19,220 nt of DNA from Octopus sinensis (taxonomy: Eukaryota): NCBI RefSeq assembly GCF_006345805.1, contig NW_021824264.1:1-19220 (forward strand), read 5' to 3'. Shown piece by piece: positions 1 through 19,220 of the stretch. The first letter of the stretch is position 1. The number at the start of each line of letters is the position of its first letter. Both the position numbers and the translations under genes were made by a program. Under the pieces are notes generated by a model that did not search any database, was not told the origin of the DNA, and was given only the letters and a program-made list of their open reading frames with translations.

Positions 1-886
1 CTTTGGGTTGTCGTATTTTGCCTATTTTAGGCGTCTTCTGCGTTTTTGTTCCCAATGGGGTTTGCCTCAATCTGGAATTGACAAATTTATCAAAAAAACT
101 CACAATATTTAGATTTGTGGTTAAATTGCTCGAATAATTTTTATTAAAATTTCACAATTACTTTATGTTGGTTATTCTAGAATTCAATTTAATCAATTAA
201 TTATGGAAAATAATGAGCGATCCAATTCTTAATAATTAGTTCAACCTGACTTCAGGAATGGTAGGTTTTCAGGAATGGTAGGTAAAGAGGTGTAATACAG
301 CCAATAATTCCGAATGTCAGATTTGTAGAACTTTGTTGATAGTTCCGGGTTTTTCTCATACAATTAAACTTTATATGTAAAATAATTTAAAAATTATAAA
401 TGTAATTAAATTCTGATTAATAATCTAAAATGATATAATTTTAAATTGTATAAAAGTTAAGAAATTCCCAAATTGTTTAAAAAAATTAATGAAAATAATA
501 ATCAATAGTTTTTTTCTTCATAGATAAATTTCTGATCATGTTGTTAATTGATTCAAGTGAACTTAAATCAAAATTTTCATTTTGATAATAAAATTTCTTT
601 AATTTATCGTGGGAGTTTTGAGGGTCTTTGATTTGGCAGGGAATCTTGTAGTCGGGGATGTCATATTTGTAGATTCCTCCGAGATTTGACGTTATTCCCT
701 TTTTGTTGATTACATAATCTTCTGGTTTGTCAGCTAAAGGGACTGTTTGTGTGTTTTTTAATTGTCCTTTTACTCGGGATGGAGTATAACTTGTGTTTAC
801 TAACCAATTCATGTTTGGAATTTCTAATTTAGTATTTAATGTTTAATACCTGAACTTATTGGATCTGATTCGTTGTCACAACTCAT
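1..886 (-). pseudogene. Probable NRDE2-like gene, 5' part, disrupted downstream of 486 and possibly running off the window start
   Basis: ATG at 886, a 37-nt exon and a 26-nt GT-AG intron (824-849) join in frame to ORF 486..812 (MSCDNESDPISSEIPNMNWLVNTSY...). MNWLVNTSY and VINKKGITSNLGGIYKYDIPDYK resemble recalled NRDE2 N-terminal motifs (DWLSNPSF; FTDKKPD..N....LYRGDIARYK). The downstream minus-strand pieces (YWLYYTSLP, RSLFSI, SRLRQT) are only loosely compatible and contain stops. Recall-based, not searched. Confidence 0.4.
251..283. repeat. Tandem duplication with 17-nt period (TTCAGGAATGGTAGGT x2)
   Basis: Identical 16-mers at 251-266 and 268-283. Confidence 0.9.
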
Positions 887-1210
887 GGCACCACAAGAAC
901 ATTCTTTAATTAAACTTTTTTTATTTTAAATAATTATGAAAATATATATATTAATAATACACTTATTAATTATGAATGACTCTGATTCAATAAATAAGTT
1001 AAATGGACTTGAAATTATTTTTCCACAGGAAACCATTTGATATTATGTCAGATTGTAAAAATTTCTACTTTGTAAAACATAAAATATTATTTTAAAATAT
1101 TTAGCAAAATTTGTGAACTAAATCATAGTTTCTGTTTATTCATTGTTCAATTATGTAAGAAATTACGTTTTAAAAAATAATATAACCCGTATTGTGACGT
1201 TTTTTTAGAA

Positions 1211-2173
1211 ATGGATTCTTTTTTTAATCCATTAGTATTAAACTCTAACAATTTGTACATTCCTAATTATTTTTACTCCACTGTTGATAACCAATATATT
1301 TCCGATTTTTATCTAAATAATTTAAACTTGGTCAACTTGGCAACTGAAATGTCAACCAACGTATTTGCTTCATTTGACACTCCAAATAATTGTTCTCTCT
1401 TATTCCACACCGAAAGCCCAATAAATTATTTTTCAGGATTCAATCACCCTGAATTTATGTTTTACGACAATCCACAAGAAATTGAAATTCTTATTGTCCC
1501 TTTGATGGCTGTATATATAACTTTTCAAATATTCATCCTTCAGAGGTTCATTATGACGACTTGTCCTGTCCTTCTGAAATTCAGATTAATCCTTATACAT
1601 ATCCGCAATTTTGTAAACCTTATATTATCGACAATCCACAAACAAATAGACAACCTTCTCCGTTTTTGAAATACAAAATTCAATCTTTGCCAAAAACTTC
1701 ACAAATAAATAAAAACTCTACTATTTCATCTGAAATCCAATTGAAACAAGTTTGTGTCACCTCTGAACAGTTTGACACGAAAATTTTAGGTGAAAACAAC
1801 CGTTCTCCTACCAAAATAAACTTTAAAGACAAAAAGCCAGCCGAATTATCAAATAAAGATCAAAAGAGTTTGGCAAAGTAATAATTTTTGATATTTTATT
1901 GTTTAGGATTGAAAAGAAAAGAAAAACTGCACTTCGTATGAAAATTCTACGACAAGAAGAACAAAAACAATTAAATGAATTAAAGAAGAAATTGAATATC
2001 ACTAGTAAAACCCAAGTGGAAACCTTAAAAAAATAGCCGCGGGATTGAAACAGACAAAAGAGACAGTTATGGAAAATATGGTGCACTCTTTTATGAAAAT
2101 GGGAGCTATCATAAATGAGATACACGGAAATAGCCACGATAAATACAAGGAAAAACATGACTTACCTTTATAA
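1211..2173 (+). CDS. Unidentified two-exon gene with low-complexity N-terminus and a basic/helical C-terminus weakly resembling bHLH; two apparent -1 frameshifts
   Basis: ORFs 1211..1669 and 1561..1881 join if one A is added at 1485-1487. A 29-nt GT-AG intron (1878-1906) removes the TAA and gives LAKIEKKRKTALRMKILRQEEQKQLNELKKKLNITSKTQVETLKK. One extra A in the A7 run at 2027-2033 continues IAAGLKQTKE...HDLPL to TAA at 2171-2173. Confidence 0.55.
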
Positions 2174-2338
2174 CTAGTTTTATTATTTGCGGCCGTAGAT
2201 AAAATATTAGACTGAATAAAGTTTTAAACTACTTAATGAGTGCCTGAATGGATAAGATCACTATTTGAAATCAGATCAAAACTACAAATATTTGTAATTG
2301 ATTAAATTCAACTTATTTAAGCGAAACCAACAAAAAAG

Positions 2339-2917
2339 TTAAAAAAACAAGAAATAAGAAAAGCTATTTTTTAAGAAGCCAATCGATACTGAAGACTGGA
2401 GGATCGTCTGAAATATAATTTTATTTTTGTCAAAAATACCGTTTCTGTCATCTTTCTTATACCCTTTATCATCTTTTTGATCTTCGCCGCATCTCTTTTG
2501 ATCTTTTTCTTGGTCTCGAAGTGCTTTTGGTTTTCTGTTGACACACACTTTTGGGATTTCCAAATTTCTCATAAAATGTGTATATGTCCGTTTTTTATCG
2601 ACGACATCTGATAAAATAATTGTTATACTAATCAAACAATATATTTGCCAGTCATCAGTTGTGATAGGGTCTGGTAGTCTTATAAATTTGGCTCTTGGAT
2701 TATCCCATTGACGCATAGCTTCTCTCTCGATATCTATAAACGCATCCCAACGTTTGCCCCAAATGTCATCATTCATTGTATTTGAATCGTCCCATTCTCT
2801 CCACAGAGATTTTCTTTGAGTCTCATTTTGGCTATTCCAGTTGATGTCTGAGCACTCATCAGCTTTACATCGACATGGAATTCTCATGCAAGTACAGTTG
2901 TGATTATCTTCAGGCAT
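2339..2917 (-). CDS. Orphan Trp/Asp-rich protein with a Cys-rich N-terminus (CTCMRIPCRCKADEC)
   Basis: 192-aa uninterrupted ORF, visibly less AT-rich than its flanks. A candidate in-frame 30-nt GT-AG intron (2608-2637) would remove the hydrophobic stretch CLISITIILSD. No recognised family. Confidence 0.55.
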   Translation of the reverse strand: MPEDNHNCTCMRIPCRCKADECSDINWNSQNETQRKSLWREWDDSNTMNDDIWGKRWDAFIDIEREAMRQWDNPRAKFIRLPDPITTDDWQIYCLISITIILSDVVDKKRTYTHFMRNLEIPKVCVNRKPKALRDQEKDQKRCGEDQKDDKGYKKDDRNGIFDKNKIIFQTILQSSVSIGFLKNSFSYFLFF

Positions 2918-3139
2918 ATTTGATCGTTAACGCGTAAATAATATTGACTGTATTTATAGTCGATTTGGGGCGTTTCGGCTTAATAAAATTAGAAAATCAA
3001 AAAAAATTTACGGCATTGACGCGTAATTTATTATTAAAATAGTAAGAAAATACATTTTATTACTAATATTTTTTCAATATATTATTAGTAAAAAAAAGAA
3101 TCCCGAAACAGTTTTTATTTACTTTTTTTGCATAACACA

Positions 3140-4739
3140 AATTCTTGAGTTTAGCCATTTCCTCAATGGCTTGTTCGTCCTGTGGCGTCCAACAGGGTGA
3201 TCCTTTGGGCCCATTACTGTTCGCTCTTGCAGTGGATGCCATTGCCCGCGTTAATGAATCGCCCCTTAATCTTTGGTATCTCGACGATTGCACCCTGGGC
3301 GGTCCGCCTGATCTTTTGCTAAAGGACTTAGCCAGACTAATTCCGGCTTTATCCGACATTGGTCTGGTTATTAATTCCAGCAAGTCCGAGATTGTCAATC
3401 TCTCTGTTGAGCCATCCCTGTTTAAGAACTCCTTCTCTCTTTTTTGCAAACTCCTTCCTGAGTTGAGACAGACACCTCTGTCTGATCTGGAAATTCTGGG
3501 GTCACCGATTCTCGCCGACTCAGCTACTCGAATCCTCCTTGGCAAGAAAAATCTTATTGCATCTCTTTGTGCAAAACTTTCTGTCATTGATCCTCATCCT
3601 TCATTTTACATCCTCAAGAACTATCTTTTGATCCCAAAAATTGTTTATATCCTGAGGAGCTCACCTTGTTTTTATGCAACCCAAATCTGGAATCTTATGA
3701 TTCCTTGGTTCGGAGGTCTGCGGAGAAAATTCTCAATGTGCATTTCGACGATATTGCCTGGTGTCAGGCTAAACTTCCTGTGAGCCACGGGGGTCTGGGC
3801 CTCCGTTCTAGTATGGATTTGGCTCTTCCTGCCTTTCTTTCTTCGGCGTCTGGATCATATCTTCTTGTCCAAAAGATTCAGGAAAAAACTACTGAATCAT
3901 CGTTAGACTCTGATATTGATTCGGCCCTCGCTTTTTGGAAACGCAATTTCTCTGAAGTCCTTTCCGATGTCTTTTCTCAGCGAGACTGGGACAAAATTCT
4001 TTGCCGTCGATCTTCAACATGACTTGGAACCACTCCTCGACCAACACAGACTGACATGTTTCCGATCCGCCTGTCAGCCATACTCAGGCTCCTGGTTGAA
4101 TGTTCTCCCGTCTCCGCTTTTGGATACTGTCCTCGATAGGGATTCACTCCGTCTGGGTATCTGTAATCGCCTTGGACTCCCTGTCTGCAGACCTCACCCA
4201 TGTCGTTGTGGGGATAAAGTTGACGCCTTTGGGCTACATCCTGTCGAATGAGCGCCGGCCGATTTCCTCGGCACACCGAAATCAACAATCTAATTCAGAA
4301 AGCTCTGGAAAGAGCTGGTTTCCCTTGTATTCTGGAACCGACGGGCCTTGTTCTTGAAGATGCAAAACGTCCGGACGGCTGTACGCTGTTCGTTTTTGAA
4401 TCCGGGAAACAGCTCGTTTGGGACGTCACCTGTTCCGACTCTTTCGCCAAGGGTGCCTTAAATGCTACGGCTTGTCGACCCGGTTCGTCGGCCGAGAAGG
4501 CCGAATTCGCAAAACTAACGAAATATGAGGATTTACTCGATCGATTTTGCTTTTGGGCAATTGCCGTCGAAACTTCCTGTGTTTTTGGGGCCAAGACGCT
4601 TGCTCATCTCAAGAAACTTGGCCGCTTGTGCACCCACCGCTCCAGAGATCCGAGGGAATTTATATTCCTTATTCAGAGGATCTCGCTGGCTGTTTTACGC
4701 GGGAATTGTTTTTCAATCCTGCGAGCCAGTTCATAGTAG
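3140..4739 (+). mobile_element. 5'-truncated CRE-clade-like non-LTR retrotransposon (RT + zinc knuckle + restriction-like endonuclease), frameshifted
   Basis: Consecutive ORFs give RT motifs GVQQGDPLGPLLF and WYLDD, GGLGLRS, the zinc knuckle CRCGDKVDAFGLH(PLS)C, RHTEINNLIQKAL, the RLE core RPDGCT...VWDVT, AVETS and QRISLAVLRGN. No APE domain. It starts mid-RT; frame breaks lie near 3670, 4015 and 4245. Confidence 0.88.
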
Positions 4740-4929
4740 CTAGTTTTTTTTGATGATTTCTTTTGTGGTTTTTAAGATATATTCCAAAAAAAAATTTTAA
4801 CTTTTGTAGATACTACGGTCTAATAATGATGAGATAAATATTCAATTTAATTTGTTTACAGTTCGGAGAAGACTGCAAGAAGTATTTAATTCTTAAAAAC
4901 GCAACATTTTTATTAATAAGACTAAAATA

Positions 4930-5760
4930 AACATTTAAAATTAAAAATTTTTCAAAAAATATGACCCTTCAGATTTAAAGCTTTTTATTTTGAAGTATTT
5001 TGCATTTGCCATCCAGCCTACAGTTTTAGACATCTACTTACAAGAATTTAAATATTTTTCTAAAATTGACATGATTTTCTTCTTGTCTTTTTTCATCATA
5101 TTTATTTATTTTTCAAGTAAAACACAAGAAGCACCTCAATTTGGATATAACTTGGGAAAAAATCAGTTTATCTTACATTAGACAACATCAAAAGTCTGTT
5201 TTGCTAGACTCAGAAAATCCTATAAGTTATTTTCAATGCTCACGTGTGCTTCTTTCCCAATGTCTTAACAAAATGTGAAAAAAAGACCAACGTCTTGAAA
5301 TGTCTTTTGAGCCTTTGGAAGTTTGGAAAACACCCCTGAACACGTTGGGCCTAGTCAACATGTTCACAGAAATATGCAATGTTGATCTATAGATATTGAA
5401 TTGGTTGACATTGCAAAATTAAAACGTGTTCCTATCAATCTTTGGCTCAACTTACTCATGCGAGCAAGTTTTTTAAAGCATAAGCATTATGAAATTTAAA
5501 TAGCTCACCAATTTACTAGCCAGAATCTAAAATTCTGCTTGGAGACCAAAGTCATGTTTTAAAGCTTCGAAATTATTTTTTGTGCCAAAGTTTAATTATA
5601 AAACATCACTCACCAAACTGTACGCCAATTCAATGAGTATCTCCAGCCCCTTCAAGTCACCCCTTCTCTCGTCTTTTCCACATTTCCGCTTTCGTCCCCA
5701 GCGCTCACTCGCCTTCCCTGTCAATGAATATTATATCTTAAATATTATAAAAATAGCCAA
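4930..5760 (-). CDS. Unidentified multi-exon host gene with tiny introns; exact frame and boundaries uncertain
   Basis: Regularly spaced GTRAG donors paired with AG acceptors give introns at 5432-5455 (24 nt), 5220-5243 (24), 5151-5176 (26) and 5018-5041 (24). Flanking exons read e.g. DFLSLAKQTFDVV and KYDEKRQEENHVNFRKIFKFL|LDGKCKILQNK. Several frame breaks. Confidence 0.5.
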
Positions 5761-5879
5761 TTATTTCAAAATATTTTAATAACCTCAAAATTTCATGTGT
5801 TTACTGTTGTTCTTGTATGGTTCGTAAAAAGAATTTAAAGATTAATCTTTTTAAATAATTATCAATTACAGCTACTATT

Positions 5880-6237
5880 TCTTGCATTAAAAAAAATTTG
5901 GTTTACTATTTTGAAAGGAAAATTATATCGGAGACAACGATAATTAATTGTTGGCAGAAAATTAACGAAAACAGATCAAAAATTTCTGAAAATGTACAAT
6001 TGGACAAAGAATTAATAAATACGTAATAGCAGATGTTATAATAATGGATTCGACAGATATTATTTAGGACAAAATCACCTATAATGGAAATGAATCCAAA
6101 AAATCATCAATTAAGGAAATCATAAACATCATGAATTCTCTATAAGATAATATTTTTAGTACATGTCCACAAGGTTTAAAATTCTACTACGAATTTCGAA
6201 AAACCAATTTGGTAGAAAAATTACTGATTATTTTTAA
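5880..6237 (+). mobile_element. Decayed 3' remnant of a pogo/Tigger-like transposase
   Basis: ISETTIINCWQKI resembles the W..V...TI.NCW.K motif after the DDE_1 domain. The fragment ends in KITDYF* (6217-6237), like the C-terminal PIP-box (Q..I..FF) of pogo/Tigger proteins. In-frame stops; no TIRs seen. Confidence 0.45.
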
Positions 6238-7150
6238 TAGTATTTTTTGTCGGATTTATTTTAATTTTTACATTTTATTAAAAAAAGACAAAACGTCGAA
6301 CAATCCCAATCTCAGATGAGTATAGAGGACGACGGGATTTTTCTCTGACAGACTACAGGGAGTTGACCCCCCAACAGAACGAGGACTTGTTAGGCCTATT
6401 CACTAACTTCGGGTTAATTAAAACAGAGTCCTTTCTAAGTAAGACCATAAAGAAAACGGTTGATCTTAATGACCAGATTAATTAAAATCAGATTTTGATC
6501 TATTTAAAACGAATACAGCAATATTCTTTGAGTTATGTGTTTTTGTTAATTTAATGGCCAGGAGCTTATTTTTAATATGTCACGTTACGAACGCGGTATT
6601 ATCATAATTCCCAGTCCAGTCTTTAATAAATTAAGGAATGGGAATTTTTATGAAATTGAGAACCTTAATGTAAGACAATTTGATATCACTGTCTCGATAA
6701 TACGACTCTGATTCAAAAGTAATAACACAACACAAATGCTGAATTTTGTTGAGAGTCATTGCAGGAACTACTGAATATAAAATACAAAGTTGCAGTATTT
6801 AATTAGTAGTTCGGAGTAATTAAAACAGAACACTGTTTACTAGACAAACTGATTTAACTACGGTTGTTGTTGGTTATAGACTTATTTGATTAGTTTATTG
6901 CACTAAAAAGACTAATTTCTCCTGTCTATCAATTACTAATGTACACTCAAAGCACAGATAAAGGAAACTAGTAAGTTTAATAGTTACTATTGCATTATAG
7001 AATCAATAACTTTGTATTTAGATAAGTTCAATCGTAAATGAGTACACTTGGAAATTTATACAAAATTCAGTTTTAGAAAATAGGACAATATTATGGAGAA
7101 CTACTACTATTGGCTAAAAGTAACCCTTGTGTTGAATTTGAATGTATATC

Positions 7151-9196
7151 CAGGGTTGTTAAAAATCATGATTTTTTTCAAAAAAATCAAAAAAATCTGA
7201 TTTTTTTGATTTAATCACGTTTTTTGATTTAAATCAGATTTTTTTGATTAAATGATCTTTATTTCAAAACGACCCTTTCCACCTGGCTTATCAGAGAACC
7301 TCTCTCTTTGTACATAAACACTGAAAAACGGCCACGCAGAACGATCTATCGTAGTTCCTTATGTCCAACGGGATCACTTAACTAGTTTGCATTACGCTTT
7401 CTTCTTTGTGGTCTTCGGGTTAATAAATAAAAAAATATTTCAAAGCGAACTAAAATAAAAAACAAAAACAATGGAAATCGTTTTTATTATTTAAAAGCTT
7501 GTAAATGGAAAAAAGTTGGCTGCTTTTTCGATCCCCAGCCTATTGCGTACATTTGAATGTAGAAATCCGAATGTTGAAAAAATTCTTTCTATTCCACTGT
7601 CGAAGCAACTGCTCCAAGAATTTTTTTGCATAGTGAAATTACTTGTGAAGGTAACTGGTATGAATTCGACTCCCACCAAGCTATAGGTGATACTTTACTC
7701 AATAAATTCGGAGCAAACATGTATTGTTTAAATGGATCAGCTTTTGCTCTGAAATTAATCAGAGTCGGAAGTGCATATTCATAATTTTGAGCACAATAAC
7801 TCAATGCAATGTCAATCTCAACATTTGAAAGAGATTTCCCACTACATGTCGGGTCGATCAAATTCGCAAGTAAGTGGAAAGGTGTTAATGCTTGTTTTGC
7901 TCGAATTCTCACTTTTCCTAAAATATTCGTACATCCATTGTCAATATATGTCTGTTCAAGTTCTTTCCAAATTTCTACAGCATGACTAATCGTGGTAGAA
8001 TCATTCTGAATTTTATCTAAAGCGACAGCAATTGGTTTAATAAGCATCAGATATTCTTCAACGCGTCGTTTTAGGGAAATATTTTGGACCTTGGAAAAAA
8101 TCTCTGTATCAATATCCGTTCTGTGTTCCTCACAAGTTCTCAAAATAATAGACCAATTATCCAGATAAGATTGAAAACAGTCTGATAAAGTGTTCCACCG
8201 TACATCAATCGGAAGAACGAGTTTTTTTCCTCCATTAGATTTGTACCATGCAGCTGGAAGATGGACGTTTCGGAAATATTTATTGATTGTTACAATAGTT
8301 CCTTTAACGTCCGCTACCTCGACATCCTTACAAGAAGGTGAGATAATGTGCCGAGCAACCATAAGTAATTATTTCATTGCCATCTTCCATCATTATCCGT
8401 CTCATTTTAGTCATGTTGGCAGCATTATCCGTTACAAGACTGCCGATTTTACATCCAAACCGTTGTTCAGCCATTGTGCGGAGGCTAAAGCAACAGATTG
8501 AAGATATTCCGCAGTGTGGCTATATCCAGAAGTGTCCACAGTGTCAATGAGATAATTTTCCCCATCTGATGTCACAACCGAGACACAAATAACGGGTTCA
8601 TTATGAATGTTGCTCCACCCATCATAGACACTGTTTTGTCCTGGAGTCTTTGTCGACAGTCTTCATGTATTTGGTCGTACACATGATCAAGTAATGTACC
8701 ACCAATTTGATGACGAGAGGGTAAACGATACCCAGGAAGAAGCATTTGGACGAATTTGACAAATTCGGGATGTTCTACAGCAGCAAACGGAGTGTTTGTA
8801 GAAAATATGTATCTAGCGAGTTGCAGATCCATCAAATCTTTCTTAGATGAAGTCGTCGTAGTTACGAAATTGATTAATGAATGGTCCTTCATCCTTGGAG
8901 GAAATTCGCTTTCAGGTCTCGGCATATTTTCAGGGATATCAATATTACTTCGACATAATAAATGATGCTGCCTCATCCGAGATACAAGACCTTGTATGTC
9001 CTTCCCACAATTACGACATCTGGCACGGCTTCCGGTCTTTCCAGGAATAATACGTTTATCAAATAAGCCCACAAAGAATCACGCTTTCTTCCAGACATTT
9101 AAAAAATTTAAATGATTTTTTTGATTTTTTTTAATGATTTAAATCATTGATTTTTATTGTTGATTAAAATCAAATGATTTAAATCTAACAACCCTG
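7151..9196 (-). mobile_element. Full-length hAT DNA transposon (2046 bp)
   Basis: 11-bp TIRs CAGGGTTGTTA (7151-7161, inverted at 9186-9196). Near-perfect 8-bp TSD: GTATATC at 7144-7150 versus GTAATATC at 9197-9204, one base missing on the left. Dense subterminal GATTT/AAATC motifs at both ends; encloses a hAT transposase. Confidence 0.92.
7487..9098 (-). pseudogene. hAT transposase (BED finger, DDE core, C-terminal dimerisation domain), frameshifted in this sequence
   Basis: Stitched frames give MSGRKRDSLWAY(F), the BED finger CRNC...HHLLC, catalytic DGWSN, TDNAANM, the CxxH motif CSAH, DVRWNT and ERIFSTFG...RNRL. The frame breaks are mostly single-base losses. Confidence 0.88.
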
Positions 9197-9286
9197 GTAA
9201 TATCTTACTCTCACCTGTTAGACACAAATAAAATATTTCCAATCTCATTAAAACACTTTTTTAAACATAACAAAAAATATAATATT

Positions 9287-10144
9287 TTAAATATCCAAAG
9301 CCAGAATATTTTGAGCGTATCTGACAAATCGGTCAAATTGAAGTGGCCAGGCAGCTTAAAATAAAAACGTAAAATCCAACCACCAAAATCATAAAAACGA
9401 AGACTTTCCAAATCAGGAAATTGTCTATAAAAAACCAAAAAAGTATTCCAACAATCCTTCGTAATATTCTTCCCATCATCCTACCAAAAATGTAAAAAAT
9501 AAAAAAACAGAAATAAAATCAATCCAAATGGATAAAAACACATTTCCGTCAAACAAAAGTCGCCAATAAGCAATGGCCAAGTCAAATTCAAGAAAATCAA
9601 CATTTTTTGAATACTCAAAAACAAAGAAATAAATTCGAGAAAATTCTTTTTTGTCTTTTTGGACAATTTCAGCATATTTCAGACATTCTGTGGCCAATTC
9701 GCTCAATGTTTGGACACTACGTATATTTGTTTAAAACACCCTAAATCATGGAAGACTGATAAAAATTCGTAATAAGTAAATTGGCACTGTTTTTTGGCTC
9801 CCATTTTCCAGGCTAAAATAAGAACTTCAATTTTTTTGTGATCGAAATTCAAATCGATCAATATTTTTTTTATTCTGTGGGTCCAATTATAAAGTTATTT
9901 TCTGATTTTTATTTTTTGAATAATAACCAGAATAGCTGTGAAATAAAAGGTCGATTTTTGATAGTTTTTGTTTATTTTTTAAAAATTCTTCAGATATTTA
10001 GCCCATATTTCCGTTATGAACTAAAAACATGTTTTCACCCCAATCAGCTGAACAATCAAATAATTCAATTAATCTATTAACAGTCCATATTTTCTACAAA
10101 TTATTTAAAATAATAAAAAATACGTTTTTGACGTACTCCGTCAT
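9287..10144 (-). CDS. DCN1: DCN1/DCUN1D-like cullin neddylation E3 (UBA-like + PONY domains), six exons; one -1 frameshift and one in-frame TAA in this sequence
   Basis: Exons 10124-10144, 9928-10093, 9740-9901, 9509-9716, 9381-9480 and 9287-9354; introns of 30, 26, 23, 28 and 26 nt, all GT-AG. The spliced product contains IEVLILAWKMGAKKQCQFT, FSRIYFFVFEYSK, LEFDLAIAYWRLLF, ITKDCWNTFL and YDFGAAWPLQFDRFVRYA, matching DCN1 hallmark motifs. Frameshift near 9875; TAA at 9998-10000. Confidence 0.9.
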
Positions 10145-10342
10145 GTTTATTACGAAGCTATACAACAACTAGAAAACAAAAAATCATTTTTTTAATTTAA
10201 TAATAAATAAAATAAAACAAAATTAGATGCTAGAATTGTTTTGCGATCAATTTTTAAAGTGAGATTTATATTAAAAATAATGATTTTACTAATTTAAATA
10301 TATTTCCCAATTTTGTAAAATTTTTATTTATTGAATGAATAT

Positions 10343-11131
10343 ATGGATGAAAGGATTTCGGTGTGATAGTATATAATCGCATGCTAGCAGGCCGTGACTG
10401 TAGTAAGACTATGGCTTTCTTTCAAACAGAATAAACTGCTTAAGGAAAAGATTTTGCTTAAATAGTAAAATAAGACTTTTATATTGAGTATGATAGTAAT
10501 AGTAATGACTAACAGATATCTTTATTAATCGAATTCGAATAACGCTTAAAAAACACCAATTTCCGAAACTTTTCAAATTTGAAATGCAGGATTGTGATAT
10601 TCTATGCGGAAAAATAAACAATTTCATATCGTGTTTGATTTTAAAATCGGTTTCCTTTGCTTATTTAGTCATTTATAGATTACACAAAATGGCCTATCAC
10701 ACTAGAAGCTTTTTTTTCACTGGTTATTCTCTAATTATATTTTTAGTTTCCATTTTTTTGATAATCAAAAGGTGTAACAAGTTAAGTTAGGAATGAACAA
10801 AAACGAATCCATTTAAAAATCTTGTTATTCTAAGAGTTTGTTTCTTCCCCATGGAGGGAGATTATCATAAAACTATATTTTATATTTTGTCTCAATGTTG
10901 TCAATCATAGGAACAAACCTGGGAATATACGTCATTCTTGTTTGTTATTTTATTTTCACTTATAGGGGAATTTACTGTCCAGAACTTGATTGTTGGAAAT
11001 CTCCACTTTTGTGTGTTTTCCTCATTCGATCCAATAATGAATATTTAATTTATAAGTTTTTGTATGCCATTTTTTGCTCATCACATGACTCTCCTAATAT
11101 TAGACCCAATCATGTTGAATTAAAAAAATAG
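10343..11131 (+). CDS. Unidentified multi-exon gene, head-to-head with DCN1; IQ-like N-terminus with weak resemblance to C11orf65/MFI; end uncertain
   Basis: ATG at 10343. Candidate GT-AG introns at 10361-10387 (27 nt), 10488-10515 (28 nt, with CTAAC before the acceptor), 10723-10746 (24) and 10940-10965 (26). Reads QAVTVVRLWLSFKQNK and NRIRITLKKHQFPKLFKFEMQDCDILC. In-frame TAG TAA at 10463-10468 is unresolved. Confidence 0.4.
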
Positions 11132-11443
11132 GAATCTTGTTTATTTTCTTTACACTCATCGACCCAAATGAAATATATTTATAAGATAACTGCAATAATT
11201 TTCATCTGAATATTTCTTCTGAGAAAGAATGAGATTTTAAGTATTGGAAAACACTGGATACAAAAAATTTCAACGCGAATTTATTAAATATAACAGAAAT
11301 CGGGCTTTAAATAAAAATATCACTTGGATAAACAAAAAATTATTCAAAAAGAAAACTGTAAATCACGATAAAGAAAATTTAAATTCTTAAATTAGTTGAT
11401 TTTTTTTAAACAATATATTTTAGTTCAAAGAAACTGTTATTTA

Positions 11444-11631
11444 CTAGAAGTTAACAAAGCCATCTATCCGAAGTGGACCCCGCCAACATATTGACGTTGC
11501 GTTGCCTCTCACGATAGCAACGGAAATCAACTAGAGAAGCCACCGGGTCTCACATGTGTCGTGGCTTTTTAATGTGGCTAAGCGTCCAAGCTTCTTTAGG
11601 AAGCGAAGCGATTCCGACTTATTCCTCCAGT
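11444..11631 (-). mobile_element. 3'-terminal fragment of a CRE-like retrotransposon (end of the RLE domain)
   Basis: Minus strand reads (TGGISR)ESLRFLKKLGRLATLKSHDTCETRWLL*LISVAIVRGNATSI, aligning by eye to KTLAHLKKLGRLCTHRSRDPREFIFLIQRISLAVLRGNCFSI of the 3140-4739 element. Not in the ORF track in this frame. Confidence 0.75.
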
Positions 11632-11659
11632 TGAATGAATGAATGAATGAATTTTTATT
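11632..11659 (-). repeat. LINE 3' tail: AATAAA followed by (TTCA)5
   Basis: The plus strand shows (TGAA)5 at 11632-11651 and TTTATT at 11654-11659. Confidence 0.85.
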
Positions 11660-11672
11660 AACGGAAAAGCCG

Positions 11673-11751
11673 AAAAAAGAGGGAGAAAGTTAATGAGACA
11701 ACGTATGCCTCTTCTTCGTTGTTTCCCTCTTTTTTTTTTTTTTTTTTTTTT
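11673..11751 (-). other. Predicted 3'-UTR stem-loop of the LINE, abutting an A22 tract
   Basis: AAAAAAGAGGGA(G)AAA (11673-11688) is complementary to TTTCCCTCTTTTTT (11722-11735). Inner stem CAACG (11699-11703)/CGTTG (11717-11721) with a 13-nt loop. T22 run at 11730-11751. Confidence 0.65.
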
Positions 11752-14489
11752 AAATTTAATTCGAGAAGAAAAGGCTCTCTCAAGAACACTTCCAACCGTT
11801 TCCGTCGCGTCTTCCATCACTTGAGGGATGGGTTGGTCCAACTGGAGTCCATTTGCCAATTTGATGGCATATCGCCTCGTCTTTTCGAGCTTAGCGATAA
11901 TGCCATCCCTTTCAGCAGTAGGATACCATCCCTCGAACCCGTAGGTAAGCAATGGTTCGACGCACGTTTTATAAACATATAAAAACGTTTCCGGGGAAAG
12001 GTGGAAGTGAATTATGCTCCTGAGAATTTGAGCGCATTTCCTTCTCCTCGAGTCGATGTATCTGAAGTAAGAACCCTTGGATCCAACTTCAACCCCAAGG
12101 TATTTCAGGTTCTCCGTTACTGTAAACCCATAGAGGTTTCTCGGCGGTTTTCGTTTTGCTCCCTGTTTTGCAATCCAAGTGGCGGTGCACTTTTCTTTTG
12201 CAAGCGACAGTCCTTTTGATATGCACCATTCTTCCACTCTTGTCACGTATCCTTTTAACTTCCTCCACGAGATGTCTTTTCTCCACGAAGCATCCGTTAT
12301 TAATATGTCGTCCGCGTAGATCATGAGACGACTGGTAGGATCTTTCGGTTTTGGAATATCAGCAACGTAAATATTAAAAAGCAGGGGGCTCAAGACCGAG
12401 CCTTGAGGTACCCCTCTTTGAGATCGACAGATTCCGACAAACGGTTTCGCATCGTATGTATGACCTTCTCATTGATAAATAGCTCTTCAGCCAATTGACC
12501 GTTTTAGACCCGGGTTTGCTCTTGGCGACACTTTCCAAGAGGCCCAGGTGCCATACGCTGTCAAAAGCTTTTGAGACATCGAGGCAGATAGCAATAGTCG
12601 CTGTATTATTAGCAAGACTAAGCGAGATGACTTTCTCGAGTTCTCCGAAACAATCACCACAGGATCTTTTTCGTCGGAATCCCCACTGCTCTACTGCAAG
12701 TGCACCTGATTCCTCTACGAAGTTCGAAAGTCTTGTGAAGACAATCCGTTCCATAATTTTAGAGACGGAGCATATTAGGCTTATCGGCCTATAGTTCTCT
12801 GCATGGTCCTTTATTTTTCCAGGCTTTGGAATCATACGTACGATTGACTTTTTCCAAGAGTCCGGTACGTATCCAAGTCTCCAGCTTGCATGTATAGTGC
12901 GGTCAAGTATCGTAGGAGAATATTTGGAGCATGTTTGAATACAGAAATTGGAATGTAGTCATGGCGGGTGCATTATTCTTGCAGCTCATAATTGCGGCAT
13001 ACGTTTCTTCCAACGTTATGTCTCTGCACAGTGGTCCCGTATGACTCAAATTAGCTCTTAGACTTCTCTGAGCCTCACATATAACTTCTTTCGGAACCAT
13101 CTCGATCGGATCCACCTCTTGAACTTTTGCCAGTTGACTTCGCAGATGTGAGGGAACTTCATCGAGCGGGATATCTATTCCTTCAGTTGTTTTTAGTCGG
13201 ATCTCTTCTCCTTTGTTCTCCATATTACTCAGTCTGTTGAAAACCTTCCAAAAATGAGGGTTTTTCTTATTCAGTTTCGAGCATTGACTCTTCCAAGCAA
13301 GGTCTGAATGTTTTTTTGCGACATCATTTATCTCTATTTTCACGGTACGAATCTTATCCCGAAGACGAATACGATCTATGGGGTCACTGCATCGTCTTAG
13401 CTTCTTTTCAAGGTTTCCCTTCCATTTTATAAGTTTTCTTAAAGATTCGTCAATCCGGGTTTTTCTGTTAGTATTTGACATGATGTATTTCCTGATTGAA
13501 GATTTTCGGAGAAAGTCCAGTATAGCTTCTCTGAGAATTTTATCAAGTTTTTCAATTTGTATATTCGAAGAGATTTTGTATTGGATACGGTGTCAAATGC
13601 TTTTTCATTGATACCTCAAGGTCCGACCAGATTGTCCGAGACGTATCGTATCCGATAAACAGATCTTCGCATATCGTAGATGATGTTCGCATACACAAGG
13701 ATTGAGGTAGGTGATCACTACCAATGTTTATCTCAATCCTTGGTATGCTGCATTGATGAACAAGATCTGCCGATACGAGGAAAACTCCAATACCCTCTCC
13801 ATAACAAGAGAAGTGGTTTGGTTCTCGTGAGGTCAAAACACTAAAACCGCAGTTCTCCGATAATCTGAGGAGTATATTACCGTCCGATTTGTGTTGGCAC
13901 ATCCGTACGATGTGTGTTTTGCGTTAAGGTCTCCTATTAGAATTCCTCTATCATTGTTCTGAAAAATTCTTCAATAAGATTTTGATAATTCTTCATTGCT
14001 TTGGAGTACATAGCTCCGACAGATATCCATCCAAGGGATGTTAGTAGTTTCAATGTAATCAGTTCGCACAAATTTTGTTCGACGATTTTCAAGTCCCTCA
14101 CCATCAGCACAAACTTGAACCCTTCCCGCATTAACTTGATTCCTCTCATTGCCAAAAGCGACTCCCTGACCAGACCAGAGTTGGAACAAATCAAATCATC
14201 GGTCTTACTCAGTCTAAAATCTGCTGAAATTAGAATTTTCAGTTTTATGGACAGTTCCCTGAACGTATTGCTTGCAGGACATAAACCATGCAGGACCTTG
14301 TGCCATTCGCAGTGGTGGGCAGTACAAGCAGAGTGGGAGACCTGAATGTCCTGGGGAGAGTGTACCCGTGGGGAGTCGTCGAGGGTACAGTCCTCCCTCA
14401 CTGCCGTAGTGGAAAACCCCGAACACGGCGAATGTATTTATCAATGTAAAAGAGTGAAGGAATCAGATGACATTTGAAGTTTGTTATTG

Positions 14490-15355: not shown

Positions 15356-15481
15356 AGGAAAAATTTGACAATGATTAATTAATTAAGCATTAATTAATTT
15401 TAAGTTATTTTAAATTATTTACTTAATTTGTGAAAATTATAAATAAATAAATACTATAAGTTTGTATTTTTAAGTGGAGCA

Positions 15482-16430
15482 TTGATGCATTATCGAAAGC
15501 ATTACATATACAATCAGAAGGATATAAAGAGGCAACCAAACGATCCGCCTCAAATAGTTTCAATGGGATGTGATCTACAAAGATCCAGAGATATTCTCAA
15601 CATTAAACTTAAAGACTTAACTTTGAATGACAAAGTAACCGTTTTTGATGCACTTCAGATCCTGGCTCTTTCAGGGTACAATAATTTTGTCCAGTCCTTT
15701 GACCGCGTATCCGAAATACTAGAAAAATCTCCAAACGTATTTTTTGTTACATTCCCACAGCCTCTGGAGTGTCTAGTTGGGAGGGAAGGGGACCTGCCTC
15801 CTCAAATCATGTCCGCATTAATGACACTGACCATCTCCAAAGCGAACGAGCATGTCCAGAACTCCGCCGTGGATGTTCTTTCTGACTTTTTTGAGTCAGT
15901 TTTCAATATATCGGAGGAGAACTTTGGTTAGTGACTGATACCCCAATGCAGAGTCCGCGAGACTAAAATATTTTGGGAACACACAATACAGGAATATATC
16001 CTTGTACTTGTTCCTCATCATTTGCCTCCATTTCCCTCCCGAAAAGCGGAATTCTCCCAAAATATTTGATATCCTCAACAATACAGGTATTTTACCCGCT
16101 CAGACCAGAATTGAAAAAAGCGACGTCCAACTTGAAAGACAAGGAGGGACCCATCCTTTTTGAATTGGTAATCTGCGGTATAATTGGAAGGACGACTCGC
16201 CTCTTCTCCAGCAAATATTGAGGTCAGGGGAGTCATTGAATCGGGAGAAAATACGGGAGGCAATTCGGAAGAGTGAGGGCAAGATGACTATGCGGCAGTT
16301 GGCCGTGGCTCTGTCACATTTTATGAGTGGAGGGGTTAGTTCAGGGGTTCTCAACCTTTTTAGCTCATGGGCCAAATCGATAATTAAGAATATCTTTGCG
16401 GGTCGCACAAAAAATTTTTTATGTTATTAA
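15482..16430 (+). CDS. Intronless orphan coding region of roughly 300 codons, broken by frameshifts or stops; origin unknown
   Basis: ORF 15482..15931 (149 aa), then overlapping frames ending ...REKIREAIRKSEGKMTMRQLAVALSHF...NFLCY* at 16430. Sharp compositional contrast with the AT-rich flanks; no tiny introns seen. Confidence 0.5.
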
Positions 16431-16869
16431 TGAAAAGAAGGCTTTATTAAGTAATAAATATCAATGCGAGACTTGATTCTGTTTGGCGTCTATTATTTTG
16501 TCGAAACAGGGAGTAAAAGTCGAACACGATGTGCGTAAAAGTTGATTTAGGTGTCCATCAGTCAATCGATTTCAATACTTTGTTTTTATTTGCGTAAGTT
16601 TGCTGAAAAAAGAGCTGACGCGTCTTCCCGAATGTGGTTGCCCTGTCTGTTAATTGGCAGATGACGACGTTCGACAGCGTACGACACACTTGCTGAGGGA
16701 ATAAAGACTGGTTAATTACTCTTGACCACTTATCCTATTTCACCAAAGTGTGTTCTTCAAGAGAAATTCAGAATATGGTTGAAGCGTGTTGTGCTATTTC
16801 AGTCTCACTACAATCTGTTAATGTCCACAATCACCAAAGAAGAACTAGACAGCCTCCACACCTTCACGT

Positions 16870-17169
16870 AAGCGTGATTGAGAACCTGACTGTACTTGTT
16901 GGCAATGTACACATACAAACTATACACGTATTGTGTTGTGTTTCCACGTCACAGTCCAGGTCATCAAGATGGTCGAACATCGAAGAATGACGAAGAACTT
17001 GTGTAAATTCTTTACACAGTTTTTGCTTAAAAAACTGCTGCGAATTGAAAAGCAGATACACCCTTATTGCGTGCAACTTATCCTTGCACTTGATCACGAA
17101 TCTGGGACCTCCGATCTTTACGACATGGTCCTCTTACAAACACTCAGACTATACATTTCCTATACTAAA
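16870..17169 (+). mobile_element. Possible MULE (Mutator-like) transposase remnant with a SWIM finger
   Basis: The frame of ORF 16933..17178 extended upstream reads CTCWQCTHTNYTRIVLCFHV (CxC-x13-CxH) followed by QIHPY. No DDE core or TIRs identified. Confidence 0.3.
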
Positions 17170-17329
17170 TGGGATTAACGTCAAACAAGTGGGATTAAGG
17201 TCAAACTATGTGGGATTAACGTCAAACAAAGTGGGATTAAGGTCAAACTATGTGGGATTAAGGTCAAACTATGTGGGATTAAGGTCAAACTATGTGGGAT
17301 TAACGTCAAACAAAGTGGGATTAAGGTCA
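17170..17329 (+). repeat. 21-bp minisatellite, about 7.7 copies, with two unit variants
   Basis: A = TGGGATTAACGTCAAACAAAG, B = TGGGATTAAGGTCAAACTATG. Order: A (20 nt, 17170), B (17190), A (17211), B (17232), B (17253), B (17274), A (17295), partial B (17316-17329). Confidence 0.97.
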
Positions 17330-18747
17330 TTCATTATTAGAGTTTGATGGTTAAAGTTCGGGAGGGGACGTCTCTCCACATTCTGAGTATAATGGGGCAT
17401 TGGTTGGGGTGTCTTACTATTGCCATCGACCGAGGATTCCCTCTCACTGTTCTACTTTCCACTACAATTTAGAACTATAATCCGTATCGTATGACTCAGA
17501 TACTCTATTTCTTCCCAGCTGGCGTCCTGTTGAATGCTCACGTGAATTTTATAATTGAATTCCTGAAATGTTCAAAATATTCAGAAATTGTATTGTGAGG
17601 AGTATTCAGTGTAGGTCTTTGCAATGCCCAATCCTTATGTGCTGGGAATAATGAAATTGCTTATGTTACTGCATGTGGCAGGGAAGACTTTATGCGCAAA
17701 CAGGACTGAATTGGACTCGTTGTGCATTATTTTGTCCACCAATGACATTGTTAATTTATTGGTGGCAATTGTAGAACTTTCCTGAGAACAAGAACAGAAT
17801 GAGTCCAGATGAGGAGCCCTTTAATCAATCCATGCTTAATCTATTTATCCAACCATTTTTGCCATACAAGCCCCCTCCTTAGAAAGGGAATAATTTTGAG
17901 ACATATCCAGCGACTCTCTATATGGGCAGACTGGAGGGAGACACTATCTATGTCCACTTATAACTCAGGAGAACATTTGCATGTGGAAGACTTTCCTTCG
18001 ATTTGGTGACGTGGTATGATTGCCGTATTATTGCAGATAAACTTTGACTCGAATATTAAGCAGCAGATATGTTGGATGTGGAGTACATAATGAGTGATGA
18101 TTTACTGAGACATTCCTCAAGTCTTTTTCTGTGCAGCCGGGGGTTGTTGTGTGTGAGTTAGTGAATAGGAGGCAAGTGTTGAAAGGATTGTCATGTCACA
18201 ACAATTCCAAGTTAGTTCGCAGCAAAAGATGACTCTGCAAAACACTTTAGGCCAGTTCTACAACCTTGACGTAACCTGTTTGGTTTATTGTAGTCGGAAT
18301 CTATTCTTTTCAAATGTAATGACATTTGTTTCAAAACTGGACTCTATTTATCGATGCTATCCGATTTACTATTAAGAATTACTTGGAACACTACAATGTA
18401 CTGCGTTTGTTATCCAGGCGGAGATGTACAATACTACCAGTCATACCGACCATCACCAACTCCTCAGTAGCCAACAAACCGGAGGCACAACGACGAAAGG
18501 TCGTGGAGTGTTTGATGGAAATAAACGACAAGATGTTAGACAGAGTCGCCTTTTCGTGGATGTCCCTTCTTTCTAATCGGTTCGTTCTTGCCCGATTTTT
18601 TCGTAACCTGTCACTCTGTTCCTCAGTCAGTTTCTTCTTCATCATCATTTCGCTGGCAGTTAGGACTTGCTTAAACTGTAGTTTAAATTTAGCGATTTTT
18701 CCTAGATAATTTATTAATAATCACTGTAATTCAAAAAAAGTTATTAC

Positions 18748-18959
18748 TAGGGCAACAAAAAAATAGCAAAATTTTTGAAAAAAATAGCAATCACCAAAGA
18801 AAAAATAGCAAAAAATAGCATTTGTATAAAAATAGCAAAAAATAGCAAATTATTTATTTAAATAAATTAACAAAATAATTTTATTGCTATCATATTTATT
18901 ATTTATGGTATTTTTATTAAATTATATTTAATAGCATTTTATAGCATTTGGTTGCCCTA
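18748..18959. mobile_element. hAT-type MITE (212 bp, non-coding)
   Basis: TIR TAGGGCAAC(A/C)AAA at 18748 and inverted ending at 18959. Flanking 8-mers GTTATTAC (18740-18747) and GTGATTAA (18960-18967) match 6/8, a degenerate TSD. About eight direct ATAGCA motifs and one inverted copy lie inside. Confidence 0.85.
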
Positions 18960-19220
18960 GTGATTAACCATTACAATCAAGGGAGGGGTGCAAACCACTT
19001 AAATTTGCTTTTTATTAAATTTATAGATGAATAATGTTTTTTATAGATTTTTCAGAATTATATTAAAAACAAATTTATTTAACGATAGGAAAATAATTTG
19101 CTAATTTCCCTCCGGTTGCTGATTTTTTCATTTGCATTCCTAATATTTTTCTGGAATTATAACAATCTTTCAAAGCTTCAGGAAACAAATTGAAAACGTT
19201 TTCTTCATGTTTATTCATTG

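Follow-up and report, generated by a model that had tools for sequence, protein, structure and literature searches.

How many of the very short GT..AG segments in the DNA studied here are spliceosomal introns, and what kind of organism would carry them? The stretch in question, called the window below, comprises positions 1 to 19,220 of contig NW_021824264.1, which is filed under Octopus sinensis (assembly GCF_006345805.1). An initial annotation made from its letters had proposed sixteen introns of 23 to 30 nucleotides (nt) between positions 824 and 10965, five of them in a gene for a DCN1-like protein. On the sequence data, we think it very probable that the window carries nuclear genes of a reduced animal, most likely a dicyemid and otherwise a myxobolid, in which ancestral GT-AG introns have been miniaturised in place.

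Very short introns in a DCN1-like gene

The strongest evidence comes from a gene of the DCUN1D1/2 type, in which five candidate introns lie within ~730 nt of coding sequence (Table 1), a figure that bears out the description of ultra-short GT-AG introns at high density. Excision of introns 3, 4 and 5 joins pieces from different frames into one open frame of ~170 codons, which matched the Pfam family Cullin_binding (PF03556, the PONY domain) with E=2.5e-20 and 73.5 bits (cut-off 27.9). In the PDB, the spliced product matched DCN1-like 2 (4gao) with E=5.5e-27 in an alignment that crosses all of the junctions, without a gap at that of intron 3. The human DCN1-like 1 and 2 structures gave E values of ~1e-26, and DCN1-like 1, 2, 3 and 4 as well as yeast Dcn1 were all matched. 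Recognition by Pfam and by the PDB was achieved only after splicing. Removal of intron 2 lengthened the match further upstream (KIDLLFHSYSE/NNFIIGPTE). Introns 2 to 5 are all 3n±1 nt long and, therefore, retention of any of them would break the frame.

The restoration of conserved motifs had been cited in favor of all five DCN1 introns. Introns 2 to 5 can indeed be regarded as proven on the grounds of homology, frame, and position and phase. Intron 1 is probably real, given that the unspliced reading through it ends in an in-frame TAG, and we grade it as probable because its position has no match in the bird or mite gene.

Intron positions shared with a bird gene

As a reference we used the gene for DCN1-like 2 (DCUN1D2) of the bird Podargus strigoides (locus L002), the exons of which were mapped exactly, and the proteins were aligned with MAFFT. 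The bird gene has six coding introns of 772-12,673 nt, at codon/phase 76/0, 148/1, 204/2, 248/1, 276/0 and 308/1. Window intron 3 coincides with bird intron 3 (2663 nt, in the Gly codon of TEL-G; both at alignment column 211, phase 2), window intron 4 with bird intron 5 (772 nt, KFLL/EHHK; both at column 287, phase 0), and window intron 5 with bird intron 6 (856 nt, in the Gly codon of EE-G-AWP; both at column 324, phase 1). Window intron 2 (column 154) and bird intron 2 (column 152; 2736 nt, in the Asp codon of YK-D-PQ) share phase 1 and lie in a gappy stretch of the alignment; when HSYS-E and NRYK-D are read against each other without gaps, the two introns coincide. With ~720 position-phase slots and six bird introns, we estimate the chance of three exact matches at ~1e-5. 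These DCN1 introns are thus orthologous, ancestral introns that now measure 23-28 nt.

Two lesions in the 5' third of DCN1

As assembled, DCN1 failed a test for an intact open reading frame (ORF), with a stop codon and a frameshift in its 5' third. The stop, an in-frame TAA in exon 2 (9998-10000, minus strand), falls in the linker that joins the UBA-like part to the PONY domain. The frameshift, of 1 nt, lies near 9872 (9859-9884, minus strand) in exon 3, at GGACCCACAGAA^TAAAAAAAATATTG (ACAGAA^TAAAAAAAATATTG), beside a run of eight A residues. It showed as a split in the homology, where the frame of IIGPTE differs from that of IKKILIDLNFD; the addition of one base gives GPTE-x-KKILIDL, which aligns with GIDG-I-QQFCDDL of the bird protein. 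When GT-AG introns of 15-80 nt were tried exhaustively in the 5' half of DCN1, none of the paths was open. Only a combination of GC-AG 15-mers with a 103-nt intron opens this half, and it was rejected as contrived; the 103-nt intron deletes conserved residues. An AT..AG 21-mer (ATATGGGCTAAATATCTGAAG) would excise the TAA in frame, and it resembles the ATGGG start of the CNOT1 case described below. The lesions may reflect an assembly error, a broken allele or unusual splicing.

Short and long introns in CNOT1

A second conserved gene, which encodes the CCR4-NOT scaffold CNOT1, is present in part at the end of the window. Its GC content of ~40% is far above that of the other host genes (28%). 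Single-frame translations of the region gave no match in the PDB; only the spliced model did, aligning with yeast Not1 (4b89) and with the MIF4G domain of human CNOT1 (4gml), and it also matched Pfam CNOT1_CAF1_bind (PF16415; E=4.6e-9). Two predicted introns, of 24 and 25 nt, are required by this model and supported by homology, in that the MIF4G alignments are continuous across both of them.

A third interruption is of a different size. Conserved CNOT1 exons, the one ending ...VLLQTLRLYISYTKWD and the other starting ...EGTSLHILSIMGHWLG, are separated by a minisatellite at 17170-17329 that consists of 7.7 copies of a 21-nt unit (GTGGGATTAAGGTCAAACTAT). The upstream exon reads into an in-frame TAA (17176-17178), before which there is no GT. 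A conserved helix is lost in the sole GT-AG solution (17128-17340, 213 nt) and spared in an AT-AG one (17169-17342, 174 nt). Each unit of the minisatellite, starting GTGGGATTAAGG, begins with a potential 5' splice site, with AT in place of GT in the first copy. The last copy, GTGGGATTAAGGTCATTCATTATTAGAG, is a 28-nt GT-AG string that would fit the frame, which makes the array look like a 28-nt mini-intron that has grown as its own 5' end was duplicated in tandem. The introns had been described as uniformly ultra-short. This does not hold, because one intron of CNOT1, minisatellite included, must be ~165 nt or longer, and for the same reason shortness is better described as a strong bias than as a hard limit.

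Two further observations concern this gene. What is probably another of the longer introns, ~120 nt with a strong GTAAGC donor, was recognized near 16866 by eye only. At 18747-18960 (plus strand), downstream of the last recognizable CNOT1 exon and probably within another long intron, lies an AT-rich insert that resembles a miniature inverted-repeat transposable element, with 10-nt inverted repeats (CTAGGGCAAC / GTTGCCCTAG) and internal AAAAATAGCA repeats.

The sixteen candidates as a set

All sixteen segments proposed in the initial annotation are present with the proposed ends and lengths, beginning with GT and ending with AG. Eleven are on the minus strand (starting at 824, 2608, 5018, 5151, 5220, 5432, 9355, 9481, 9717, 9902 and 10094) and five on the plus strand (1878, 10361, 10488, 10723 and 10940). 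Between 824 and 10965 we counted 357 GT..AG segments of 23-30 nt on both strands, as compared with 365±18 in dinucleotide-preserving shuffles, that is, no excess. Because such strings occur at chance frequency, each candidate was judged by reading frame and homology after its removal. The tally from the sequence is four proven, two plausible, two undecided and eight unsupported. As a list of introns, the sixteen were thus reduced to four to six with real support, the eight unsupported ones lying in sequence without coding evidence; the ten candidates that are either unneeded or in such sequence are probably chance GT..AG strings.

Spliced ORFs were also scored with a dynamic programme in which each GT-AG intron had to be 20-40 nt long and cost 15 codons; shuffled versions of each segment served as the null. 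Gene B (253), gene C (212) and DCN1 (180; null 90±17) scored above the shuffles. The programme over-chains in the GC-richer regions of transposable elements (TEs) and, without homology, chose a wrong DCN1 intron (9457-9484); ORF continuity alone is, therefore, unreliable. After removal of the four candidates between 5018 and 5455, stops persist in all frames, there was no Pfam match, and the best spliced ORF at 4745-7140 (113) is inside the null (106±33). A gene that had been proposed at 4960-5780 was rejected, as all of its frames keep stops once the four candidates are removed. Stops likewise persist after removal of the four candidates between 10361 and 10965, where no Pfam match was found; the top plus-strand scores at 9190-11450 came from unspliced ORFs of 86-93 codons, inside the null of 90±17.

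Three orphan genes, designated A, B and C, account for the remaining candidates. None of them has a significant homolog in Pfam or the PDB, and for this reason their introns cannot be judged by homology. The three-intron model of gene B scored well above its shuffles (109±21, maximum 169), and its segment 1878-1906, which was among the sixteen, links two long ORFs and is a plausible intron. In gene C, segment 2608-2637 (30 nt, in frame, without a stop) may be kept or removed and the 192-amino-acid (aa) ORF stays open. The GC content of this segment is 0.20, as against 0.34 in its flanks, and as coding sequence it would put ten hydrophobic residues into a charged protein; these two properties hint at an intron and are suggestive only. 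Removal of another candidate, 2408-2439 (32 nt), would alter the C-terminus. In gene A, removal of 824-849 would add a first exon of 12 codons to a downstream ORF that has its own ATG, and the score of the spliced model (122) is inside the null. To judge by these frames, 824-849 and 2608-2637 appear optional. The three genes are long ORFs in DNA of 28% GC, and are candidates for lineage-specific or very fast-evolving host genes.

The homology-verified introns of the window are 23, 24, 25, 26, 26 and 28 nt long, to which the probable 30-nt intron may be added, and their donors are GTTAT, GTGTT, GTTTT, GTTGG, GTATT and GTTCT. The initial annotation had listed variable donors; four of them (GTTAT, GTGTT, GTTTT and GTTGG) recur among the verified introns, and the strong GTAAG and GTGAG all belong to the unsupported set. 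Intron GC content is 0.15-0.26, as against 0.23-0.37 in the DCN1 flanks. Strings that resemble yUnAy (TTTAC, CTAC, TTCAG) were seen by eye 8-16 nt ahead of the AG, and in introns of 75-90% AT they are compatible with chance.

Genetic code, relatives and transposable elements

A standard code had been proposed, and the 600 supported codons agree with it: all 25 Gln codons are CAA or CAG, neither TAA nor TAG occurs internally, and genes terminate with one or the other. Gene B, DCN1 (TAA at 9287-9289) and the ORF of gene A all end in TAA.

A HMMER scan of 1.8 billion representative proteins returned 1103 relatives of DCN1, the best of them 35-40% identical. Twelve of the best 20 were named, and all twelve were from bilaterian animals (mite, nematodes, vertebrates and acoel). 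An animal host, as the initial annotation had suggested, is thus in keeping both with these relatives of at most 40% identity and with the intron positions and phases common to the bird gene. We consider the host to be a fast-evolving, reduced animal and, on the sequence, rather favor a dicyemid over a myxobolid. Scans of the window for Rfam families and for tRNAs found no match, and rRNA and small nuclear RNA (snRNA) genes could, therefore, not be used for placing the organism.

The GC content of the window is 35.6%, with 28% in the AT-rich host parts and 42% in the TEs; as figures from one 19-kb sample, this and the TE content are only indicative of the genome. TEs make up at least 40% of the window, in line with the heavy load described before, and long interspersed nuclear elements (LINEs) ~20%; two LINE fragments with an RVT_1 domain and one hAT element were found. 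The upstream LINE fragment has a Cys/His-rich C-terminal region with an RPDG...D motif, for which there was no Pfam match; we take this region to recall the restriction-like endonuclease LINEs. The hAT element has a transposase split into several ORFs, AT-rich subterminal repeats and flanking 8-mers that form an imperfect duplication (TGTATATC / GTAATATC). Among 5.8 billion proteins, the closest relatives of the reverse transcriptase (RT) core of the downstream LINE are only ~33% identical and give no hint as to the organism. One Octopus sinensis protein matched this LINE with 45% identity over 28% of the query, in the conserved RT core only. Cephalopods are the hosts of dicyemids. A (GAAT)n microsatellite (11633-11655) adjoins the 3' end of the LINE, and near the start of the window there is a perfect 17-nt tandem duplication (251-283; TTCAGGAATGGTAGGTT twice).

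Table 1. Positions of genes, introns, candidate segments and transposable elements in the window
Feature	Position	Strand	Remarks
DCN1-like gene (DCUN1D1/2-type)	9287-10144	minus	six exons, five introns; Pfam and PDB matches
DCN1 exons	10124-10144, 9928-10093, 9740-9901, 9509-9716, 9381-9480, 9287-9354	minus	
DCN1 intron 1 (probable)	10094-10123	minus	30 nt, phase 0; joins 7-codon exon MTEYVKN to KIWTVNRLIELF
DCN1 intron 2	9902-9927	minus	26 nt, phase 1, in Glu codon of HSYS-E-NNF; frame-shifting
DCN1 intron 3	9717-9739	minus	23 nt, phase 2, in Gly codon of HDL-G-VQT
DCN1 intron 4	9481-9508	minus	28 nt, phase 0, DFIS/DDGK
DCN1 intron 5	9355-9380	minus	26 nt, phase 1, in Ala codon of DFG-A-AWP
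CNOT1 gene (CCR4-NOT scaffold), partial	15440-19220 (~15.4 kb to window end)	plus	Pfam and PDB matches; beyond the 824-10965 range
CNOT1 mini-intron	17449-17472	plus	24 nt, in frame, ends in stop; removal joins GFPLT/NYNPYRM in the MIF4G/CAF1-binding domain
CNOT1 mini-intron	17590-17614	plus	25 nt, frame-shifting; joins KYSEIV/FAMPNPYVLG, aligned with human SVVFRPPNPWTMA
CNOT1 long intron	17169-17342	plus	~165-213 nt; contains minisatellite
Gene A, orphan	486-886	minus	108-aa ORF 486-812; candidate intron 824-849
Gene B, orphan, ~298 aa	1211-2173	plus	candidate introns 1511-1545 (35 nt), 1878-1906 (29 nt), 2005-2036 (32 nt)
Gene C, orphan, Cys-rich N-terminus	2339-2917	minus	candidate introns 2608-2637 (30 nt), 2408-2439 (32 nt)
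Four candidates	5018-5041, 5151-5176, 5220-5243, 5432-5455	minus	without coding support
Four candidates	10361-10387, 10488-10515, 10723-10746, 10940-10965	plus	without coding support
Non-LTR retrotransposon fragment, 5'-truncated	3145-4740	plus	45-48% GC; C-terminal part of RVT_1 only
hAT-type DNA transposon, decayed	7151-9196	minus	zf-BED and DUF659; 11-nt terminal inverted repeats CAGGGTTGTTA / TAACAACCCTG
LINE	~11729-14400	minus	full RVT_1, E=1e-38; frameshifted ORFs; ~25-nt poly(A) (T run 11729-11752, plus strand)

Discussion

The explanation that we favor is that, in this organism, ordinary U2-type GT-AG introns of ancestral origin were reduced to ~23-35 nt without a change of position or phase, as the DCN1 introns show. 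A conventional U2-dependent spliceosome could remove them by intron definition, with the whole intron serving as the recognized unit, and the signals needed might be no more than the GT and the AG with a weak stretch between them, A-rich or yUnAy-like, 8-16 nt ahead of the AG. Intron definition with minimal signals has been argued for myxobolids from the conservation of U2 snRNA and U2AF (PMC13644364), and removal of this kind has been proposed for dicyemids as well. Shortness would then be a strong bias without a hard upper limit. The initial annotation had gone further and concluded that the spliceosome is length-constrained; the long CNOT1 intron speaks against such a constraint, and the published mean intron of 38 bp in Dicyema japonicum and median of 27 bp in Dicyema sp. 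imply a tail of longer introns there, too (PMC6736024, PMC6543705).

Several points weigh against this interpretation. The mini-introns are known here from genomic sequence and not from transcripts, and for those of genes A, B and C the argument is purely one of ORF logic. DCN1, which as assembled has no intact ORF, could be a pseudogene or could contain assembly errors, and CNOT1 also carries an unexplained in-frame TAA. No close homologs were found in word-indexed searches with the spliced DCN1 C-terminus and the LINE ORF, or in metagenomes with an exact 38-mer of a DCN1 exon. Exact look-ups of four window ORFs in the assembly collection found no record of them, and in the collections searched nothing linked the window to a dicyemid at the level of sequence. 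Lastly, the choice between a dicyemid and a myxobolid turns only on GC content, TE content and the abundance of LINEs.

One alternative is that the GT..AG strings arose by chance, that there are no mini-introns at all and that DCN1 is a decayed pseudogene with random insertions. The chance frequency of GT..AG 23-30-mers, the lack of support for ten of the sixteen candidates and the stop and frameshift in DCN1 would all fit, and chance indeed best explains the eight candidates at 5018-5455 and 10361-10965. It is contradicted for the introns of DCN1 and CNOT1: three GT..AG interruptions occur at the same column and phase as in the bird, a fourth has the same phase two columns off, and CNOT1, an essential gene, shows the same pattern. 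We, therefore, regard chance as an extremely improbable general explanation. A separate possibility, which we find doubtful, is that this copy of DCN1 was inactivated recently, as a pseudogene or a broken allele, and that its introns are genuine relics no longer under selection. Its TAA at 9998-10000, its 1-nt frameshift near 9872 and the failure of every canonical splice path to open the frame are what such a copy would show; against this, the ~170 codons of the PONY domain are fully open, GT-AG is intact at every junction, and the frameshift adjoins a homopolymer, a classic spot for an assembly error. Furthermore, CNOT1 is an improbable pseudogene and has a comparable lesion, which points to data quality or unusual splicing and not to gene decay. 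One could also envision that the lesions are themselves biology, with non-GT donors (ATGGG/ATATGGG...AG) that excise the TAA in DCN1 and CNOT1 and with a mini-intron that grows by duplication of its 5' end (GTGGGATTAAGG, 7.7 times), or else that introns <30 nt exist in a third animal lineage, so far undescribed, to which the window belongs; we think that this is quite unlikely, and we return to ancestral introns miniaturised in place in a known lineage of reduced animals.

Which lineage this is must be weighed separately. A ciliate or another short-intron protist (Paramecium-like, Stentor-like, a piroplasm or a nucleomorph) might be considered, as ciliate introns measure 15-30 nt in AT-rich genomes and as in-frame TAA codons were seen in DCN1 and CNOT1; alternatively, the segments might be internally eliminated sequences of a ciliate germline. 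The verified introns are, however, 23-30 nt long, compared with 15-16 nt in Stentor (PMC13644364). The Gln codons are exclusively CAA and CAG and TAA serves as a terminator, the boundaries are GT/AG and not TA repeats, the best DCN1 relatives are animals, and LINE and hAT elements occupy at least 40% of the window. Sequence so rich in LINE and hAT elements is ill-suited to piroplasms or nucleomorphs. The standard code, the 23-30-nt introns and the GT/AG boundaries together exclude the usual ciliate options, and a protist host is very hard to credit; the initial annotation had likewise set aside a ciliate or piroplasm. A myxobolid myxozoan of the Henneguya, Myxobolus or Thelohanellus type is another matter, as it would change the lineage and leave the intron biology unchanged. 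In myxobolids the median intron is 22-27 bp long, the GTa...AG signals are reduced and intron positions are conserved (PMC13644364), and the AT-rich host parts of the window, with 28% GC, come near the 29.1% of H. salminicola. On the other side stand the 35.6% GC of the whole window, its TE content of at least 40% and the two LINE fragments in 19 kb: myxozoans have been described as relatively TE-poor (PMC13644364), and LINEs amount to 0.46 Mb in the 161-Mb assembly of M. honghuensis (PMC8855578). The named best DCN1 matches are bilaterian and include no cnidarian, which is weak evidence given the long branches. We consider a myxobolid origin possible and unlikely, and continue to prefer a dicyemid.

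Introns shorter than 30 nt in animals have already been published, and no new principle is added here. Such introns test how closely the 5' splice site, branch point and 3' splice site can be spaced for a spliceosome, and in the genome sampled here they co-exist with many TEs and with occasional longer introns. Their practical value lies in a warning for annotation: since GT..AG strings in this size range are as frequent as chance predicts, each intron needs the support of frame, homology or transcripts.

Comparison with known short-intron systems

Among animals, introns of <30 bp have been reported only in dicyemids and in myxobolid myxozoans (PMC13644364), exactly the two lineages that the description of the host as dicyemid or myxozoan-like had named. 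Ciliates resemble the window in their very short GT-AG introns (~25 nt in Paramecium, 15-16 nt in Stentor) and AT-rich DNA; they differ in that TAA and TAG encode Gln in most short-intron ciliates, whereas the window has the standard code and animal-like gene relatives and TEs.

The myxobolid mini-introns were surveyed in Henneguya salminicola, Thelohanellus kitauei and Myxobolus spp. by Hadjez et al. 2026 (PMC13644364). The window fits their median of 22-27 nt and their conserved positions, but these features are common to dicyemids. The myxobolids differ from the window (35.6% GC, at least 40% TE) in the low GC content of H. salminicola, where the median intron is 27 bp, and in generally lower TE and LINE loads. 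TE content is variable among myxozoans (PMC13644364, PMC8855578). In M. honghuensis, LINEs stand at ~0.3% and the mean intron is 507 bp (PMC8855578).

Dicyemid mini-introns were described by Ogino et al. 2010 (as cited in PMC6543705), Lu et al. 2019 (PMC6736024) and Zverkov et al. 2019 (PMC6543705). In D. japonicum the GC content is 36.7%, repeats amount to 48.9%, with LINEs in many copies, and genes have 6.2 introns each (PMC6736024), and two-thirds of the introns of Dicyema sp. are shorter than 30 bp (PMC6543705). The in-frame TAA lesions of DCN1 and CNOT1 and the intron expanded by a minisatellite are not among the dicyemid features in the passages compared. The likeness otherwise extends to the size class of the introns, ~5-6 introns per gene and weak GT...AG signals, to the retention of ancestral intron positions ('conservative exon/intron structure'), and to genomes of ~37% GC of which about half is repeats with many LINE copies, as compared with 35.6% GC and at least 40% TE in the window.

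The vertebrate DCUN1D2 gene of Podargus strigoides serves as the long-intron counterpart. Bird intron 4 (codon 248, phase 1) is without a counterpart in the window gene, and the bird introns measure 772-12,673 nt, as against 23-28 nt for the matched introns of the window. Four of the six bird coding introns are nevertheless matched, three exactly and one two columns off, and this single gene illustrates how introns of 772-2663 nt in a bird can have counterparts that are ~30-100-fold shorter at an unchanged position.

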